From Podarcis filfolensis (taxonomy: Eukaryota): 64,000 bases of DNA. Numbering within the stretch: the stretch's first letter is position 1; the number at the start of each line of letters is the position of its first letter. The notes under the pieces were generated by a model that did not search any database, was not told the origin of the DNA, and saw nothing but the letters and a program-made list of their open reading frames with translations. Positions 3,286 through 46,136 of this stretch are shown one piece after another. The stretch is from assembly GCA_964270895.1 (NCBI GenBank), contig OZ185447.1. One strand, 5' to 3'. Made by a program: the position numbers and the translations under genes.

Positions 3286-3365
3286 GTGAGTCCTGGTTTG
3301 GCCTCGACCCTTGACAGTCCTTTCTTTTTAAAGGAGGGTGATGACCTCTTGTTTTGTGTTCCCAG

Positions 3366-3470
3366 GGACTTCATAAATGTGCGTCGGATTGAGAGAAGGA
3401 GAGACCGGTACATTTCATCAGGGATGGCAACAGTTCACAGCGCACGTCCCCCTACTTCCAAATATGTCAG
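3366..3470 (+). CDS. STARD3: STARD3 exon
   Basis: Follows an 80-nt intron; 105 nt; [34 protein letters not shown](R). Confidence 0.96.
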
Positions 3471-5590
3471 GTATAAAGAGTCCTATGGATGGTGCTTTGA
3501 TCTATTTTATTACCTGTAGGTTTCCTCCGATGCACTGGCTTAAATCGTGCATAAGTCTTTGACTTTTAATTTCTGAAGAATAAAAAGTTTCATGGGCAAT
3601 CCACCTGGACAAGATACAATGCAAATTACACTATCACTTCCCAAAATGAAAATAAGACCTTGGATACTTCTAAAACTGGGTAGCCTAGTATGTAATGTGA
3701 AATGAGACAACATGAAACTATATGGTAGTTTTATGCATAATTTAGGGGGACTCCTCAGATATTTAGAAATAAAAATTAAAGGGGGGGATTAACAACCTGG
3801 TTAACCAAGGACTGAATGTCTTCTAGAACCAACAGAATGCTAAGCTGGGGTGGGGAGAGAGGGAATTAGCCTGGCTGAACCTCTGATTGTTTAGTATCCT
3901 GGAGAGGTGGACATTAGGTTCAGAGGAATCTGCACCACAGGGCTAAAATATCCCCCTCCCTGTACTGTATGGGGAAGTTTTAGGAGGAAGCAAAGGGGAA
4001 AGGGCACCTTTTCCCTTTCTCCTTCTGCAGAACTAAACCTGAGCTCTTCAGTGCTAAATAGCACAGTAGGGGAAGGTTTCACGAGGATGGGGAAACAAGA
4101 AAGGTGTTTTGCATGTGACTGACAGTCAGTAACCCTTGATCCTTGGGGAAGTCGCAGGTGTTGAGGTGTCCACTCAAACCAGCTTTTCAACGAAATGGTT
4201 CTTCAGTGCTTCCTGGGTGTCTAGTCCAACTTTGGCTCCCAGCTGCTGTCTTGTGATGAGCAGAGCTCTTGCCCGAGCATCAAGGCCTCCTTTGTTATTC
4301 TCAGAGCCTCTGCCTCAGGTGACCAGCCAGGGTGTCTTTGCTCACCAACTTCATTTTTCTGACTAATAGCATTAAAAAGTCATTGGCCTTTAGCTCAGCA
4401 TCTGCGTAGCTGTTGGGGGAAATCTGTGAGAAGGGCAGCGTACATTCCCCACATCGCATGCACATGATGAAATACAATGCTCCTTGTCTCTTTGTCTTGA
4501 TCAAGCTGATTGGATTTCTAGCATTTGAAATGCGTGGGAAGTGGTTGAAAATATGAGTTTTCTACTTCAGGTGTCCACACACTGAAACTGAACAGGCATG
4601 ACACCTGTTGCCGCCTGCTCTTCTCTTCCCAAACACCATTCCCTCTAAACTGCTGTTGCCTTTCTGGTTTCCACTTTGCCAGGCAAGAAGTTCCAAGGGC
4701 ACTACACAGCTGGGTTTAGTTTCCCTTGGATGGGGGTGCACGGATGACTTCAGATTACTTTTGTAAAACTTGCTTTCGGTGACAGCAAACACACTCCTCC
4801 AGCAAGACAGGAGCTTGCTCTTTTAAATGGGAACTGAGGCACTCCCATAAAAATGCAGCACATGCACAGATGCTCATGGCTTCTGACGTTATTAATGGCC
4901 TGGCCTGGGCCCAAGGTATCTGTAAGAACCCATTCCTCTATGGCCCATGCCATAAAACCCCTGCTGCATGTATCAGCATCTTCAGAAAAGTGCTCAGGGA
5001 GGGGGTTTTCTGTCTCATTTATGGAAGAGGAGGCCTGCCAGGATCTTCTTTGTGCTGAGGACTGAAAAAAGTGAGGCTCTAAAACCGTATCGGGGGATGG
5101 GGGGAATTCAGTTACTCATAAGACGGGGAAAATTGGTATGTGCTTGATATTTTCATGATTTCAGAGTACACTGCTTTGGGCACAGGATTTTATATATCAA
5201 GCCCAATTCTTTCATGGGCAACCTTCCAGGGGCTGTATGATGGCGGATGGGGTGGAGCCACAGGCAAAAGTAGATGTGGCAATGGGTATGCCTCTTGCAG
5301 ATATTCCACCCATGAAAAAGCCAGGTTTCTGCAAAACTCTTCCGTTCTCCAGCCAGACAAGCGAGAGACATGGTCGCAGTTCAAAGACACATTCCAATCA
5401 GGAAAGAACACTTCCGGGCCAAGCCAGAGGAGAGGGGGCATGGCTTAGGGGGTCCAGAGGGCCAGGTGGAGAGACACAGAGGGCCACATTCAGCTCCTGG
5501 GCATGTGGCTCCACACATCTGTTCTAGGTAATAGCCAGCTATTAAATTGCTTCTGCTGTGACAACTCTCCCCGTTGTTGGCTTTTTCCAG

Positions 5591-5684: not shown

Positions 5685-6837
5685 GTAAGGCATGTCTTGT
5701 CCTTGAGTGTTTTCAGTTGAATGAGCCAGATTGTGACCATTTCTCTCCTGCTCTACCACTGTTGTGTTTTGCTTTTTAAATGGCTCGTTGTCACGTCCAA
5801 GGTCTCAAACCTTGGAAATTTCTGGGTCCTGGGTCCTGATTAGACGTTTTTCACGTGAATCAAACGGCAATGTGGCCCAGATGCTGTAGTGCCATTAAAA
5901 TCTATTCCTGCTCCCCTCTGATGGACGTGGTATGTGGTTGTACTGCTGAGGATCAAGATGTGCCTTGGAGAACGGTCCAAGTAAGAGGCGAGGGCTGCTC
6001 TCCCTCCAGAATGCAGAATCAGACCAATTGCATAGCTTTGCTAGCCAATGAGTGCCCTGTTTGGGGATATAACTTGGACCTGATGAGATGAAAGAGAGGT
6101 GCTGAACAGAGGAATATGTAGGAAAGAGGGAGATTTTAAGGAAACCCTACGTTGAACCACCCAGAGATCTATGGGTATAGGGGCAATGTACAAATTTAAT
6201 AAATATAGTAGTAGTGGTAGTAGTAATAGTAGTAGTAATACTATCCTGTTGTGTTTATATACCTAACATAACAGTGTTACCTGTAACAAAATGTTGCAGT
6301 GTGACTGACAACCCACTGACACAGTTAAGGATTATCATGCTTGCCAGCTGGGATCAGAAATTGCTCAGTTCTGTGGTTCCTTTCTCTGTGGCATTCTCTT
6401 AATCTTATGGTTTAAGGGGAGGAGCCATAGCACCATTGTAGACCGCATGCTTTGCATGTGAAGAAACCCCAAGGTGCGCCACTGGCATCTCCAGGTAGAT
6501 ATAGGGAAAGCGCTCTCTTATGAAAACCAGGAGAGCTACTCCCCAGTCCGTGTGAACCACCCTTGAGGTAGGTGGACCAATGCATGGATTCAACATAAGG
6601 CAGCTTCCTATATTCCTATGTTCATTTCTACTGCCCCAGCTTAAAGAGAGCAGTGGTTGAGCACATGCTTAGCACTGGATGCCTTGGGTTCATTTAGTGG
6701 TATCTCCAAACAAAGGGGATGTTGGGCAAAGACCTGAGAAATGGTGCCAGTTTGGGCCAGGCAGACCACTGCAGCTTCAGAACCTGTATCAGAGTTGAAG
6801 ATGCTTCTCTGGCTTCATCCTTCGTCTCTTCTTGCAG

Positions 6838-6942
6838 GGCCGACTTCCCCGCTACCTCATCAACCAAAGCTTGAGCGCCACCATGACGGAATTTATTTTC
6901 CACCTGCGCAAACGTATTATGGAGGTCATGGCGAGGTCTTAG
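6838..6942 (+). CDS. STARD3: STARD3 last coding exon
   Basis: cag|GGC...TAG; [34 protein letters not shown]. Confidence 0.96.
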
Positions 6943-11737: not shown

Positions 11738-11814
11738 ATGAATTTCTGGTACAAAGTTTGCAGCTGCTGTTGCCATATAGAAGAAGAACTGGAGAAGAAT
11801 CCATTGGTGGTTGG
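11738..11814 (+). CDS. Melanoregulin-like gene, coding exon 1
   Basis: ATG...GG|gtatgt; 77 nt, phase 2; MNFWYKVCSCCCHIEEELEKNPLVV(G), like the human MREG Cys cluster and EKEPLV. Confidence 0.85.
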
Positions 11815-12426
11815 GTATGTGTTACAAATCAGCTTTTTCATTTAGCAAGCCCCGAGCTTCTGCCAAATTTATAATAAGCAATGGCAGACAATGGCATAAA
11901 TTAAGGTTCTGCTTTCAAAGTGATGCTGTACAGAAGCTGGCAGTTCTGGAATTCTGGAAGTACAGAATATTGCTGTTTAGGGCCCCAGTTGGCCAGACAA
12001 CCCCACCCTTTCCCAGGATACTCCATTTCATCCCCACTCCCAACAACCAGATGGCATTTCCTTCCTCCATTAGAGCTCTGTGTCTAAATATTTCAGTTCT
12101 ACTTTTGCAAACCTTAGCATTCCCCCAAGCCTGCTGAAAACCTCCTCCTCCTGCAGTGGTGTTTTGGTTATGTAACTTACAGGATTCATCATGAAAGGAT
12201 TCCGCCTAACTTGCTTTCACACTTTAGCTACTGTTTCAATGTACAGTGCTTTGTTTGAGCCACAATCTTTGTGTGTGCCTTCACAAAAGCCCTCTTGAAT
12301 TATATGCACACTTTAATTCTAGGGCTGCAACATTAAATGCTTCTATTAATCAGCTTTTAATTAATTGGTCTCCTTTAATTGAGGGTGACTTTTTAGTCTG
12401 AAAAATTATTGTGAATAAATGTACAT

Positions 12427-12670
12427 AAAGGTAAAGGGACCCCTGACCATTAGGTCCAGTCGTGGTCGACTCTGGGGTTGCGGCGTTCATCTCGCTTTAT
12501 TGGCTGAGGGAGCCGGCGTACAGCTTCCGGGTCATGTGGCCAGCATGACCAAGCCGCTTCTGGCGAACCAGAGCAGCGCACAGAAACGCCATTTACCTTC
12601 CCGCCGGAGCGGTACCTATTTATCTACTTGCACTTGATGTGACCTTCTGATCGGCAAGTCCTAGGCTCTG
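12427..12670 (-). mobile_element. Sauria SINE, internally deleted, in MREG-like intron 1
   Basis: Tail and body match other copies; the middle segment is missing after TTGCACTTGATGTG. Confidence 0.88.
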
Positions 12671-13522
12671 TATGTACGTAGCAAGGCTCAAACCCAAGGT
12701 TTCCAGTCCCAACCTGGTATCTACCAGGCTAAAGAGATGCATTGCACTCGCCGCAATGGTAAACCTGTGCCCAGGCTGCACTGCTTTGGACTGAAGTTGC
12801 AGGAATCACAACATGAAAGAAATGTTGTTTCTGTGCATGAAAGCAAATAGCTTGTCAGGGAGAAGACTATGCCTCTCCCTCAATATGCTAGCTGTCTCTG
12901 TGCAGGGACTGTTTTTGTACAGAGAACAGACCCTCCGAGTGACTCATTATTCAGGGACAATCTCGGATTTACAGAAGCTGTCCTGGTTTCTGATTTGATC
13001 CTGGAATGTCCCGCTTTTCCTTAGAACGTCCCTATTTTCACTGGAGAAATGTTGGAGAGTACGGAATAGAATGTCCCTGGGGCTTTTTTTCAGCTGGAAC
13101 TTGCCAGCACCTCTCAGAGAACGAGGGAGGTGTTCTTGGTGAGTTCCAGTACTTCTTTTCCTAGAAAAATAGCACTGGACTTCCCTATTTTTGTTGGAGG
13201 AGGCTATGTGAGAAGCATTTGCCCATGTGAGCTCCCACTTTCAATCCCAAGTGATAAAGCCCAGATACCAGATACAGTACCTAGGAAACTGCCTTCTATT
13301 GATCCAGACCATTGCTCCATGTAGCACAGTATGGTTGACAATCACCAGCAAAGATTCTCCAGGGTTTCAGACAGGGGACAATCGCAGATGTCAGAGATTG
13401 AGCATGTGCTCTACCACTGAATTACTTGGTGAGAAGTAGATCTAGGAGTCCTGTCTCGGTTTGAAGAGCAGCCATTGTGATGTTGTTTGTTTGTTTGCTT
13501 GCTTGTAACCTTTCTGTTGCAG

Positions 13523-13682
13523 CGACACGCTTCAGTATTTCAACAAGTTGCAGAAACGCCGGGAATTAGAGGCTGTCAACTTGTGGAATGAACCAGTGGA
13601 CAAGACTCACGTGGAACGGGATGATGATCATAAACTCCACATGTTGTTGGAGAAAAGGTCAAAAACACGCCGGGGATCAGAG
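13523..13682 (+). CDS. Melanoregulin-like exon 2
   Basis: cag|C...GAG|gtatgt; 160 nt; DTLQYFNKLQKRRELEAVNLWNEPVDKTHVERDDDHKLHMLLEKRSKTRRGSE, like MREG NLWSMPHDVSHTEADDDRTLYNLIVIR. Confidence 0.92.
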
Positions 13683-14192
13683 GTATGTTGTCCTTGTGCA
13701 TGGAATATTTTTGTTTGGGGGAGAATTTAATTGCAAGACATTTGCCCACGTAGTCTGATATGGTTGGTTCATCTGGAGAAATATGTACCAGACAAGGATG
13801 TCAACAGACAAGAATTATTGTGTATGTGTGCCCACAAACACAGTGATGCATTGATGTAAGCATTAAAATAATATAAACCAGTTTCTAGTTTCTGTCACAC
13901 TCTAGTGTGACCCACAAATAAAAACCAGCATAGGGCTATGCAGGTGGGGTTGGCTAATGGCTTCCATTGAGTGATGCAACATAGACGCAATCTGCATGGG
14001 TGGCATGACCTTTAGGAATAGGGGCCTCAGTGGGGTGCAGTGTGTTAATGGTGCACACACAAAGCAGCCCTTTAGAGATCCCTGTAATGTATAGGCCTTT
14101 CTCCACACATACTTTACATGACGGTGGGCATTTTGCTGAAAAACGTAGCTTAGTGGTTCATTCTTTTGATGGTCTCCTTTATCCTGACAAAG

Positions 14193-14283
14193 GAATACCG
14201 ACGCTTGAGCTTTGACATCATCGCTCACCGGCAGATCCGTCGGAAGATGAAGGACCGATGGAAGCAAATCCTAGAAGTCTTGG
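14193..14283 (+). CDS. Melanoregulin-like exon 3
   Basis: aag|GAA...G|gtatgg; 91 nt; EYRRLSFDIIAHRQIRRKMKDRWKQILEVL(G), like MREG [31 protein letters not shown]. Confidence 0.93.
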
Positions 14284-14579
14284 GTATGGTGTCCTTGGGG
14301 GATTTCCACCACAGACCAAACTGGAGAGTGTTAGGAGAGCTATTATCCTTACTCGCTTTCATTTCTCTCAAGTTTGGTTTTAGTGTTCCACAACTAAAAA
14401 CTACTAGAGCCTTTTCCCTGTTGACTTTGGAGGGGTGAAGACTATTATTTACCTATCCTTGGCCACTGTGAGAGCAGGATACTGGGTTCCATTCCTATCC
14501 AACAGGGCTGCTCTTGTTATTATTTATTGAGTTGGTTTTGGGACTAGATATGGGCATAAATGATCTCTTCCCAATGTAG

Positions 14580-14746
14580 GATTCAAAGCTGAAGCAGATG
14601 GGCTCCTCACTGTCACGTCCAGCACCTCATATGAATCCCTTCGCAATCCTCAAGAGGCCCGTAGGATCCACACTGCCCTGGCTGAGCAGACAACCATTTT
14701 TGGCTGGCATCGTGGTGGTCCACCTGAGAGATACCTCTTTGTCATT
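14580..14746 (+). CDS. Melanoregulin-like exon 4
   Basis: tag|GA...ATT|gtaagt; 167 nt; FKAEADGLLTVTSSTSYESLRNPQEARRIHTALAEQTTIFGWHRGGPPERYLFVI. Confidence 0.93.
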
Positions 14747-15510
14747 GTAAGTAGAGGAAGGATTTGGTAGAAACTTCTCTTGGGGCATGTGCTTGTCTTT
14801 GCAGTACATCACCACAGGGACAGAAGCTGTGGGCCTAACCCACAGTGGCATAGAAGCTACCATGGAGGTAGGAGCAGCACGCAAGCTCCTCCAGGTAGCC
14901 TGATTGTGGTTTTCAAATAACTGTTTCCAGTGTCATGAAGCCTCTGTGAGTCGCCTCCTTCTAACATGCTAATTGGCCTTACGAATCCTTTAATATCTTG
15001 CCACCCTCTCCCAAATATTTTTTCCTTTGTCCTCCAAGTTAAGGGTGACGTTTCCCCTCCTCCTAGTGTTGGGAGTGTGATGCCAAGTTTTCCGTTCAAC
15101 ACAGAGGGTGATGCCTTTAGGACAAAGCAATCCTTTTGAAATTGTCCCCCTTCTGCAGGTAGCCCTGTTAATGGCTAAAAATACATGGCGTTTGCTTGGT
15201 TAGTCAGTTCTCTCGCTTTGAGGGAGAAAGATCTCAGTTTAATCTTTTCCTTTGTCTGGAACAGGACTTTGGTTGATTTCATTGGCATACTATGCCCTTT
15301 TAAAATGTGGGGTTTTTTGGGGGGTTATTAGGTTGCTTTAATTTTGATTATATATTTTGTGGTTTTATATTTTGATTTTGTTTTATGAACCAAACCTCTG
15401 GGTATAGGGCGGTATATTAATGATGATAATGATGATGATGGAAAGAAGAATGCTTTGTTCTTTATTTGCAATAATTAAATAATTAAATAAAGGGTGTGCC
15501 AGCTCCTGTT

Positions 15511-15540
15511 TTCTTCTTCTTCTTCTTCTTCTTCTTCTTC
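15511..15540 (+). repeat. (TTC)10 microsatellite
   Basis: Direct reading. Confidence 0.95.
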
Positions 15541-16190
15541 GGCCAAATAGTTTATTGGGAACTATTTTCTACAACAAAGGGTGGATGTCTCCTAGGCTAG
15601 AAAACAGTCAGAGCAGAACAACAATAAATCACTTTATCTCCGTTTCCCCCTTTTGAATGCTTTTAGACTCAGACTTCCCTTAATAAATCTAATTTACATT
15701 TTATTACCAGATACTTGTATCTTTGTAGTTAATTACATACTCCAACCCTACCCATTCAGTATTAGGCCTGTGCTACTAAGAACCTGGGAATCTCCCTCGT
15801 GACAGAGGCTCCTTGAAGTGCTTTGGCCCCTGCCCTAAACAGGGACCATTTCTTCGGTTTGTTTTATATGTGTTTCCCTTACATCCTCTGTCTTTTAAAA
15901 GCGGGGTAGAGGCAGTTGGCAACAATTAGTTTTTTGTTTGCTTAAAGATTTGGGGGATCCCTGACCCCTCTGGTGACCCAAGGATTGCCACTCTCCCTCC
16001 TTCCATTATTTTACCTCACAATTACTGTGAGGTAAAGTGTAATTGAATCCGATATTTACTCTTGGCTCGGTGTGGGCATCATTTTTAAATTTTCTTCTTC
16101 AGGTGTGCTTAGGCCAGCTCTATTGTGGGATCTCAATGGACCCAACACTATCACCTTATTTCCTTATTTTTGTCACCTTTCCTCCCCTAG

Positions 16191-16376
16191 GACAGGCTGC
16201 TTCTCCTTGATGTGGGAGATGAATTCCTGTCAGCAGCTCGGCACTTCTACCCTGTGGAGGACGAAGAGGACGATGGCTCTTCCAGCGATGGAGGACCTAC
16301 AACACCTGGTCCTGTCTTGGTCACAATGAGCAAAGAAGCTCAGGAAGAGATGGAGGAGGGCGTGGACGGGGAATAA
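16191..16376 (+). CDS. Melanoregulin-like exon 5 (last coding exon)
   Basis: tag|GAC...TAA; DRLLLLDVGDEFLSAARHFYPVEDEEDDGSSSDGGPTTPGPVLVTMSKEAQEEMEEGVDGE*; total CDS 681 nt = 226 aa. Confidence 0.9.
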   Translation, partial: DRLLLLDVGDEFLSAARHFYPVEDEEDDGSSSDGGPTTPGPVLVTMSKEAQEEMEEGVDGE

Positions 16377-16845: not shown

Positions 16846-17663
16846 TGTACCCCAGCCACTCTGGGCGTCTCCTAACAGAATATTAAAAACACGATAAAAT
16901 ATCAAACATTCTCAGGGTGATGAACAATAATATCTCCATATTTTTTCAGGGTGTTTTGTCTTGCCTATGGCAGGGCCAGAGGCTGAGATAATAGAAAGAT
17001 ATCTTTGAGACTCTTTCTTCCCTTTATGAGCTGAACTTTAGTTAGCTATGAGGCTTTCCATGGAGTATAATAAATTACGTATATGACATAGAGGACTCGC
17101 AAACTCATTTTAGCTGAATTCACTTCAGATTCCTTTAGCACTGAGTGTACACAATTCTGGTCATAAGGCTGAGGGTGTGGAGAGGCTCCTTCTGCAGTTG
17201 TGCTGCACATGCACCAGAATGTGGGATTTCAGCCTACAACAGAGCACATTGAGAGTCTAGACTTGCTGTCCACATGTTTGCTTTAAAAAAATAATTTATA
17301 GGCCTTAGTGTGGTTTAAAAGGGGGCAGGCTGTTCCCACTCTGATGCACTGTACAAACTATCCCAACCCACCCACCAATTATTAGCAGACAGGAGAAGCC
17401 GGATATATTCAGCAAAATATGCCAATAAAGGCCAATTAGCTTAATTTGCATGATTTGTACAGCTCATGGGTTTGGGTGTTTGGCACAGAAACTGAGTTAC
17501 CCCGATGCTCTGTGTTTTGGGGGCTGAGGCTGTTGAGCTTTTTTTAGTTTGGCCCAAAGTTGTTCAACTTTTTTTTTTCCTCCCAAAAATCTCCCCCCCG
17601 CCCAAAGAGGGAATTTAAAAAGCTATTTTTAAGGAAAATCACTAAAATCTAGACTTCCGACAT

Positions 17664-30989: not shown

Positions 30990-31374
30990 TCAGCCTCTCT
31001 GGGCATCCTGAGACATGGAACGGGACAAGGAGCGGGGCAAGCCTTTCTTGAAGTCGGGGCAGGTGGGCTGGATGACCAGGGGCAGCTCCTTGGTGATCTC
31101 GGCCACAGATTTCTTGTCGAGACACACGCCAGTCGCCGGCAAGGACTCCACAGACTCTGAGGGGGTCGGGGTGAGCTCCCTGGCGCTTAGCTTGGCTGGT
31201 GTGAAGATGGGCAAGGGCAAAGGCCTCTGGTAGGGCAGGTGGTAGGAGGTCAGAGGTTCGCCCAGCAGACCCAAGCGAAGGATGCCCCATGGAGACCTCT
31301 GCACTATGACCCGGGCTTCCTGTTGCTGGCGGTAGGTTTCTCTGCGCTGTTTGTCCACTTCAAACCGAGACCAG
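30990..31374 (-). CDS. TCAP: Telethonin (titin-cap) exon 2
   Basis: cag|C TGG...TGA; WSRFEVDKQRRETYRQQQEARVIVQRSPW...YQRPLPLPIFTPAK...LPRSLSRSMSQDAQRG*. Confidence 0.96.
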
Positions 31375-35701: not shown

Positions 35702-36072
35702 TTTTGAATTATGGTGCTGGAGGAGACTCTTGAGAGTCCCATGGACTGCAAGAAGATCAAACGTATCCATTCTTCAGGAAATCAGCCCTGAGTGCCCACT
35801 GGAAGGACAGATCGTGAAGCTGAGGCTCCAATACTTTGGCCACCTCATGAGAAGAGAAGACTCCCTGGAAAAGACCCTGATGCTGGGAAAGATGGAGGGC
35901 ACAAGGAGAAGGGGACGACAGAGGACGAGATGGTTGGACAGTGTTCTTGAAGCTACCAGCATGAGTTTGACCAAACTGTGGGAGGCAGTGGAAGATAGGA
36001 GTGCCTGGCGTGCTCTGGCCCATGGGCTCACAAAGAGTCGGACACGACTAAACGACTAAACAACAACAACAA
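35702..36072 (+). mobile_element. BovB LINE 3' end nested in an older element
   Basis: ORF RVPWTARRSN...LQYFGHLMRREDSLEKTLMLGKMEGTRRRGRQRTRWLD, (CAA)n tail; 11-bp TSD CATCTGACTGC at 35691-35701 and 36073-36083. Confidence 0.95.
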
Positions 36073-36880
36073 CATCTGACTGCGTTGCCCCAGCCACTCT
36101 GGGCAGCTTCCAACATATACAAAAACATAATAAAACATTAAACTTTTTTTTTTAAAAAAAGCCCTCCTCTATACAGGATTGCCATCAGACGGCTCAGGAG
36201 TCAGATAACTCCATACCCTCCAACATTTCTCTGATGAAAATAGGGACGTCCTAAGGAAAAGCGAGGCATTCCGGGATCAAATCAGAAAAGGGGGCGGCTT
36301 CTATCAATCCAGGACTGTCCTTGGAAAATAGGGTCTGTGTATGCCATCCCAGGCTCCTTGGGGGAAAAGATGGGGTACCAATGTGAAAAGCAAAAAGAAC
36401 CACATTCACACCATACATTGAAAGCACTATGTGCCACTGTAAACAGTCATGGCTTCTCCCCCAAAATTCTGGGAGCTGGAGTTTGTTAAGGGCGCTGAGA
36501 GTTGCTAGGAGAACTCTATTGCCTTCACGGAGTTACAAATCTCAGAGTTCTCTGAGAAGAGGGCTTAATAGTAAAAGCCACTAGACAGTCTCCTCTGTTG
36601 TAGGAGGAGTGGGGTGATTCGCAGGCCCCCCTGCCTCTTGCATGGAAGGGGGAGCTGTCTAACCTTCTGCCAGCAGGGCTCTTCCCTGACAAATGACATA
36701 GACCCCCCCTCCCAGCCCATCCTAGTTCCTGACAGTAATTTGGTTATACTGGATGAACAGCTTCAATAAAGTGTCCTTTCAATAGAGTTATTAAACGACT
36801 ATCCAGTGCGAGATAAAGCAATCCGTTCCCTCGCCCCCAGCATTGCCAGGACCTCCATCAAGCTCTTGGAAAGGTCTTCT

Positions 36881-41884: not shown

Positions 41885-42000
41885 GTTTTTAATGTGTGAT
41901 GTTTTACTGTGGTTTTATGATTTGTTTTGAAAGCCTCCCGGAGTGGCTGGGGCAACCTAGTCAGATGGGCAGCATATAAATAACAAATGATTATTTATTT
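41885..42000 (+). mobile_element. LINE-tail relic abutting the PNMT exon 3 acceptor
   Basis: GAGTGGCTGGGGCAACCTAGTCAGATGGG is close to the reverse complement of copies at 36073-36100 and about 46020-46050. Confidence 0.75.
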
Positions 42001-45900: not shown

Positions 45901-46136
45901 ATCTGGCTTCCAACCTTGGCTTGGTTGATTCTTCTAGCTCAGCCAGCTTCCCTTGCCTAACAAGTGGTGCTCTCAAGTGGTGGCAATAAACAACAACAAC
46001 AACTTATTAATACCCTGACCATCTGGCTAGGTTTCCCCAGCCACTCTGGGCAGCTCCCAACAGAATATTAAAAACATGACAGTAAGAGGTGTTCGACACT
46101 GAACAGATTCCCACGAGAGGTGGTGAACTCCCCTTA

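Follow-up and report, generated by a model that had tools for sequence, protein, structure and literature searches.

In a stretch of 64,000 nucleotides (nt) of Podarcis filfolensis (assembly GCA_964270895.1, contig OZ185447.1; hereafter the window), we analysed a gene of the melanoregulin (MREG) family situated between STARD3 and TCAP, which we call MREG-A. Our results make it very probable that MREG-A is a functional gene coding for a protein, that it represents in lacertids an ancient paralog which has lain between STARD3 and TCAP since the ancestor of the jawed vertebrates, and that it is the sister of MREG-B, the canonical MREG known in mammals as the dilute suppressor. A preliminary description of the window, made from its letters, had taken the gene for a second MREG besides the canonical one; this was borne out by a fully supported split of the family (100/100) and by the existence of a separate canonical MREG in lacertids. 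MREG-A is nevertheless already known as a gene, since RefSeq annotates it in the sister genus Zootoca and in more than 100 other species, and the novelty implied by that description was overstated.

The five exons of MREG-A (Table 1) join into a coding sequence of 681 nt, translated into 226 amino acids followed by TAA, with zero internal stop codons; AG precedes exons 2 to 5 and GT follows exons 1 to 4. The exons, splice sites and translation recovered here were the same as those first proposed from the sequence. When translated singly, exons 2 to 5 matched the Pfam family PF15812 (Melanoregulin, MREG) collinearly and at consecutive profile positions, an arrangement that is far beyond chance, and three of these four exons (2 to 4) passed the gathering cut-off of the family (27 bits) by themselves. 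The orthologous protein of Zootoca matched the same profile with 184.5 bits, over positions 3-148 of 149.

Two clades of melanoregulins

A phylogeny of 71 sequences was computed with IQ-TREE under the LG+C20+F+G4 model, with ultrafast bootstrap and Shimodaira-Hasegawa-like approximate likelihood ratio test (SH-aLRT) supports. The MREG family divided into two clades, A and B (100/100), each of which contained sharks, ray-finned fishes, the coelacanth and tetrapods. Clade A comprised the window gene together with squamate, crocodilian, turtle, amphibian, lungfish, teleost and shark orthologs; within it, the window gene paired with that of Zootoca (100/100) inside a squamate clade (100/100) whose stem branch was long (0.30 substitutions per site). 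The amniotes of clade B were guinea pig, pig, seal, otter, emu, tuatara and several squamates (Varanus, Sceloporus, Tiliqua, Anolis, Rhineura and Lacerta agilis), and the clade was completed by caecilians, coelacanth, bichir, sturgeon, paddlefish, gar and several sharks and rays. Inside each clade the branching reproduced the species tree (cartilaginous fishes, ray-finned fishes, lobe-finned fishes, amphibians and amniotes). The lamprey sequence, which has a long branch, joined the A side without a resolved position and was left out of the rooting. On this topology, the duplication that originated A and B would predate the split between sharks and bony vertebrates.

Profiles specific for each clade gave the same division: the window protein scored 356 bits with that of clade A versus 173 bits with that of clade B, and none of the 288 proteins classified (287 from the database and the window protein) was ambiguous. 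Constraining the lepidosaur sequences, a group picked after the tree had been seen, to a single clade made the tree worse by 213 log-likelihood units (approximately unbiased test, p 8e-72), and a duplication restricted to lepidosaurs was ruled out by this test.

A search with exon 4 against 1.84 billion representative proteins returned 23 matches, the best of them 80-82% identical, which were then used as queries. The annotated orthologs recovered came from squamates, crocodilians, turtles, frogs, salamanders, a caecilian, coelacanth, lungfish, bichir, sturgeon, gar, bowfin, many teleosts (some labelled Zgc:91968), sharks, rays and a chimaera, under the names 'melanoregulin' or 'melanoregulin-like'. 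Judging from these proteins, MREG-A is kept in almost all jawed vertebrates other than mammals and birds, and not in squamates alone. The preliminary description had proposed an ohnolog kept in squamates and lost in mammals: the ancient paralogy stood, and the 232 sequences assigned to clade A (the window protein and 231 from the database) included no mammal or bird in the matches listed, the best 120 of 188, but the gene is retained far beyond squamates.

The second set of MREG sequences was retrieved with a profile of the core fragment and a length filter of 68-217 amino acids, which leaves out the clade A proteins of 226-250 amino acids. Among the 56 clade B proteins scored there was no teleost, frog, salamander or snake, and every teleost MREG sequence retrieved ('mreg', named zgc:91968 in zebrafish) belonged to clade A. 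Because of this filter, and of the 120 matches listed out of 188, the absences from both clades are indications only. That of mammals from clade A is the strongest, since the human locus is known, and that of birds the weakest, since the microchromosomal genes of birds are often missed. The canonical MREG may have undergone lineage-specific losses in snakes, frogs, salamanders and teleosts. Lizards would thus retain both genes, mammals and apparently birds only B, and teleosts only A.

Position beside STARD3 and origin of the duplication

The order STARD3 (+), MREG-A (+) and TCAP (+) was found in the spotted gar, the barramundi (a teleost) and the alligator; in the elephant shark and in the window the third gene, represented in the window by TCAP exon 2, was on the minus strand, and in Zootoca and Xenopus tropicalis only STARD3 (+) and MREG-A (+) were found. 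As this order is common to the elephant shark, the two ray-finned fishes, the alligator and the window, the position of MREG-A next to STARD3 is ancestral to jawed vertebrates. TCAP lies on the same strand, at 3.4-6.2 kb, in gar, barramundi and alligator, and on the opposite strand in the window and in the elephant shark; its orientation and distance in the window suggest that the region was locally inverted or expanded in lacertids.

In human, STARD3 and TCAP are adjacent, with no gene known between them, and MREG is located at 2q35 near ERBB4 and IKZF2. The ERBB4/IKZF2 region is a recognised paralogon of the ERBB2/IKZF3 block. The block that contains the clade A gene, considered together with this paralogy, makes a whole-genome duplication the most economical origin of the two clades; thus, the A/B duplication most likely corresponds to an early vertebrate whole-genome duplication, a conclusion that rests on the human map positions of clade B. 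The alternative that MREG-A is an ancient paralog derived from a small-scale duplication, and not from the vertebrate whole-genome duplications, is in our judgement improbable: the long branch and unsettled placement of the lamprey sequence on the A side would agree with it, as would the fact that no flanking genes were obtained for clade B (the canonical MREG of Lacerta agilis had zero neighbours within 10 kb), but A and B reside on different chromosomes in Zootoca, A belongs to the STARD3/TCAP(/ERBB2) block while human MREG presumably lies in the ERBB4/IKZF2 paralogon, and a timing before the gnathostome radiation fits the whole-genome duplications.

Conservation in lacertids and alternative readings

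The spliced window protein was 96% identical, over 226/226 amino acids, to XP_034990837 of Zootoca vivipara (formerly named 'melanoregulin-like' in RefSeq, now 'melanoregulin'), and the NCBI model of this ortholog has five exons whose lengths and splice dinucleotides are identical to those of the window model. The Zootoca locus is collinear with the window, with exons 94-98% identical versus about 82-91% for introns and flanks, and the GT donors and AG acceptors are intact at all four introns in both species. Nine amino acids differ between the two proteins, including Cys9 of the Zootoca cysteine cluster, which is Ser in the window. The coding changes comprised 18 synonymous and 9 nonsynonymous ones, corresponding to a synonymous rate (dS) of 0.133, a nonsynonymous rate (dN) of 0.017 and a dN/dS ratio of 0.13; about 21 of the 27 changes were expected to be nonsynonymous under neutrality, against the nine observed (binomial p 7e-7). 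Intact full-length orthologs were also present in geckos, skinks, cordylids, anguids, iguanians and snakes, and were 73-81% identical along most or the whole of the protein. Given this ratio, its p value and the intact squamate orthologs, MREG-A evolves under purifying selection and is no relic. The preliminary description had named dN/dS as a check on the gene, with a value near 1 speaking against it; the ratio came out at 0.13.

Zootoca possesses both genes, the canonical XP_060138328 on a chromosome of 135.7 Mb and the STARD3-linked MREG-A on one of 54.9 Mb, as indicated by cluster membership. The canonical MREG was also found in Podarcis muralis, P. lilfordi, P. raffonei and Lacerta agilis, the chromosome carrying it in lacertids measuring about 134-139 Mb. 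The search for a separate canonical gene, also suggested in the preliminary description, therefore located it on another chromosome, and the window gene is neither the only MREG of these lizards nor nested in the canonical clade. The canonical proteins of Zootoca, Podarcis and guinea pig were 41% identical to the window protein over about 190 amino acids, in line with the 40-45% first estimated by eye. Canonical MREG (mouse dsu/Mreg and human MREG; PDB 6CMY) and MREG-A have in common the PF15812 domain, an N-terminal cysteine cluster, a helical core and a structure of five exons, the introns agreeing in position and phase. Equivalent splice junctions had likewise been anticipated, and the Lacerta agilis canonical gene agrees with the window gene in the phase 2 end of exon 1, the 160 nt of exon 2 and the junctions of exons 3/4 and 4/5, at ..LG|F.. 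and ..FV(V/I)|DRL.. respectively. The loci differ, however: the canonical gene of Lacerta agilis spans 42.6 kb and MREG-A of the window 4.6 kb, and the window gene falls outside the canonical orthogroup both by the tree (100/100) and by its neighbours, STARD3 and TCAP.

Exon 3 of the Lacerta agilis canonical gene (L002:50688-50779) has 92 nt and not 91, its reading frame being broken by one base after 50738, and exon 4 (51073 onward) appears to be one base short at its start, which accounts for the 'LOW QUALITY PROTEIN' flag of this model. As the canonical models of Zootoca and Podarcis are intact, the break comes either from an error of the assembly or from damage confined to L. agilis. An intron of the same gene (L002:37928-46502, minus strand) contains a called gene of 553 amino acids with zero Pfam matches, which may be a transposon open reading frame.

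The N-terminal cysteine cluster occurs in both clades and is formed in the window protein by Cys 8, 10, 11 and 12. It reads C-S-C-C-C in the window versus C-C-C-C-C in Zootoca and most squamates, and the window protein therefore has one potential palmitoylation site fewer. The Zootoca ortholog, used as a proxy for the core of the window protein, matched mouse Mreg (PDB 6CMY) over residues 43-187 (E 4e-33), and its AlphaFold (AF2) model shows a confident all-helical core at residues 60-185, flanked by disordered N-terminal and acidic C-terminal regions. In clade A, the conserved YP is followed by a tail of 40-60 amino acids that is acidic, also in the window protein, whereas ancestral clade B proteins terminate directly after YPK. 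The ancestral clade A tail ends in an acidic, dileucine-like motif of the approximate form (V/I)DE(D/E)x[LF][LM]xxxL[ED], kept in the chimaera, sharks, bichir, sturgeon, gar, bowfin, tarpon, lungfish, amphibians, crocodilians and turtles (e.g. P0037, P0065, P0067 and P0098 of our set). The motif was not found in the non-elopomorph teleosts examined (Chanos, Ictalurus and Lates).

Two further resemblances were noted. In the ESM Atlas (model m109d0f8fec3a; P0028, P0245), MREG adjoins clusters of LAMTOR1, a lipid-anchored lysosomal scaffold; this candidate relationship was dropped, as none of the 58 MREG proteins compared with the Pfam LAMTOR family matched it, even with E values up to 1 allowed. 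In Foldseek the legumain pro-domain also came up, with weak matches (E 0.16-0.5).

Several observations weigh against the interpretation of MREG-A as a functional gene with an ancient and conserved role. Transcript evidence is available neither for this species nor for any lacertid; the lacertid MREG-A models retrieved from the protein collection were those of Zootoca, the window's own protein being absent (the 90% cluster consisted of two Zootoca versions), and a CpG island was looked for at the 5' end of the gene and none was found. At the protein level, the cluster contains four cysteines in the window and five in Zootoca, compared with six reported for mouse, and two stretches with the pattern of the cholesterol-recognition (CRAC) motif, picked by eye from the mouse sequence, are not kept in clade A. 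Moreover, 6CMY was the top Foldseek match (E 8e-5, probability 1.0), yet the AF2 model superposed poorly on this nuclear magnetic resonance structure (template modelling score 0.26-0.31, root-mean-square deviation 17 A). The ancestral C-terminal motif was found neither in the window protein nor in any squamate examined, and this loss, together with the long squamate stem, implies that the function may have shifted. Finally, the whole-genome-duplication origin leans on the human map positions mentioned above.

Some of these points would also be expected of a decaying or unexpressed pseudogene that is still open by chance, for which the lack of transcript evidence in lacertids, the apparently missing annotation in Podarcis and Lacerta within the protein collection searched and the lost C-terminal motif could be invoked; such a state is very unlikely in view of the constraint measured against Zootoca (dN/dS 0.13, p 7e-7), the GT/AG boundaries of four introns kept in both lacertids and the intact orthologs of other squamates, one of which, the clade A entry of the coral snake Micrurus in UniRef, is probably derived from a transcriptome. 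The idea that the window gene is the sole MREG of its genome, a canonical gene translocated beside STARD3, as the plain name 'melanoregulin' that NCBI gives to the copies of Zootoca, snakes, geckos, teleosts and sharks might suggest, is already refuted for lacertids by its place outside the canonical clade (100/100), by the canonical MREG that Zootoca, three Podarcis species and Lacerta agilis carry separately on a different chromosome, and by a STARD3-adjacent position that is ancestral and not derived, and we give it practically no credence.

Table 1. Coordinates of MREG-A and of the neighbouring features in the window.
Feature	Coordinates	Strand	Remarks
STARD3 START-domain exon	3355..3474	+	Upstream neighbour; Pfam START PF01852, E 2e-6, on open reading frame 3286-3519
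STARD3 last coding stretch	6745..6942	+	Stop 6940-6942; 97% identical to the annotated end of the Zootoca STARD3 coding sequence; 4.8 kb upstream of the MREG-A ATG
MREG-A exon 1	11738..11814 (77 nt)	+	ATG; Cys cluster (Cys 8, 10, 11, 12); phase 2 end; GT donor; 96% nt identity to the Zootoca exon
MREG-A exon 2	13523..13682 (160 nt)	+	Pfam MREG positions 2-42, E 4e-10; AG/GT
MREG-A exon 3	14193..14283 (91 nt)	+	Pfam MREG positions 43-72, E 2e-8; AG/GT
MREG-A exon 4	14580..14746 (167 nt)	+	Pfam MREG positions 74-127, E 2e-11; squamate orthologs 80-82% identical
MREG-A exon 5	16191..16376 (186 nt)	+	Pfam MREG positions 128-148, E 0.018; end of MREG domain; acidic tail; TAA at 16374-16376
Candidate poly(A) signals	16882..17074	+	ATTAAA 16882, AATAAA 17069; Zootoca alignment continuous to about 16919
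TCAP exon 2	30990..31358	-	Pfam Telethonin PF09470, E 3e-40; tail to tail with MREG-A, 14.6 kb downstream

The candidate poly(A) signals would give MREG-A a 3' untranslated region of 0.5-0.7 kb. Short interspersed repeats were detected at 12420-12640 and 12978-13065, both in intron 1 of MREG-A, and at 36000-36290, 41913-41986 and 46004-46075, with copies also at several sites of the Zootoca locus.

Proposed function and naming of MREG-A

The function of melanoregulin has been established for clade B only. Mouse Mreg reaches melanosomes and lysosomes by a palmitoylation-dependent targeting for which its cluster of N-terminal cysteines is required (PMC11854935), and the protein recruits dynein-dynactin via RILP and p150Glued, thereby promoting the retrograde transport of melanosomes (PMC9586991); its activity involves RILP-p150Glued binding and depends on the CRAC motif (PMC9586991, PMC7308992). 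By analogy, we infer that MREG-A shares this mechanism of a membrane-anchored adaptor. Its N-terminal cysteine cluster would be palmitoylated and anchor the protein on melanosomes, lysosomes or late endosomes, where the helical MREG core would recruit RILP, dynactin and dynein for organelle transport directed to the minus ends, as in mouse Mreg; the long acidic tail, a feature of clade A alone, might add a further function.

A link with pigmentation comes from fishes. In carp skin, the Mreg protein was 3.2-fold higher in black than in yellow skin (PMC7601221), and in Midas cichlids the mreg mRNA co-varied with tyr, tyrp1 and pmel (PMC3623868). As the teleost clade A mreg tracks melanophore genes, a role of MREG-A in dermal melanophores is plausible by analogy. 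A transcriptome of snake scales also listed a gene named 'mreg', which may be of either clade, as differentially expressed (PMC11988092). We propose, as a tentative idea that we consider rather doubtful at present, that MREG-A might be a melanoregulin with a function of its own, adapted to the motile pigment organelles of dermal chromatophores, kept in fishes, amphibians and reptiles and lost independently in mammals and birds, which have no such cells. If this were true, the teleost 'mreg' would not be the ortholog of mouse dsu, and the pigment studies in fish and frogs that cite mouse Mreg would be describing another gene.

The public names mix two ancient MREG lineages. For sharks and gar, the NCBI name of the STARD3-linked copy is 'melanoregulin' (P0098, P0104 and P0117) and that of the true ortholog of mammalian MREG is 'melanoregulin-like' (P0176, P0180, P0186 and P0196), and the clade A gene bears the name 'melanoregulin' also in snakes, some geckos and teleosts. 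Our literature searches found no paper on MREG paralogy, on the linkage to STARD3 or on the orthology of teleost mreg. As the teleost MREG sequences retrieved were all of clade A, pigment studies that apply the mechanism of mouse dsu to fish, frogs and snakes may be reasoning across paralogs.

In summary, the microsynteny of STARD3, MREG-A and TCAP was held for about 450 million years and was followed by gene loss in the region of the mammalian ERBB2 amplicon. MREG-A represents no new kind of gene; the value of this analysis lies in a clarified orthology of the melanoregulins and in a testable hypothesis on a paralog that is absent from mammals.

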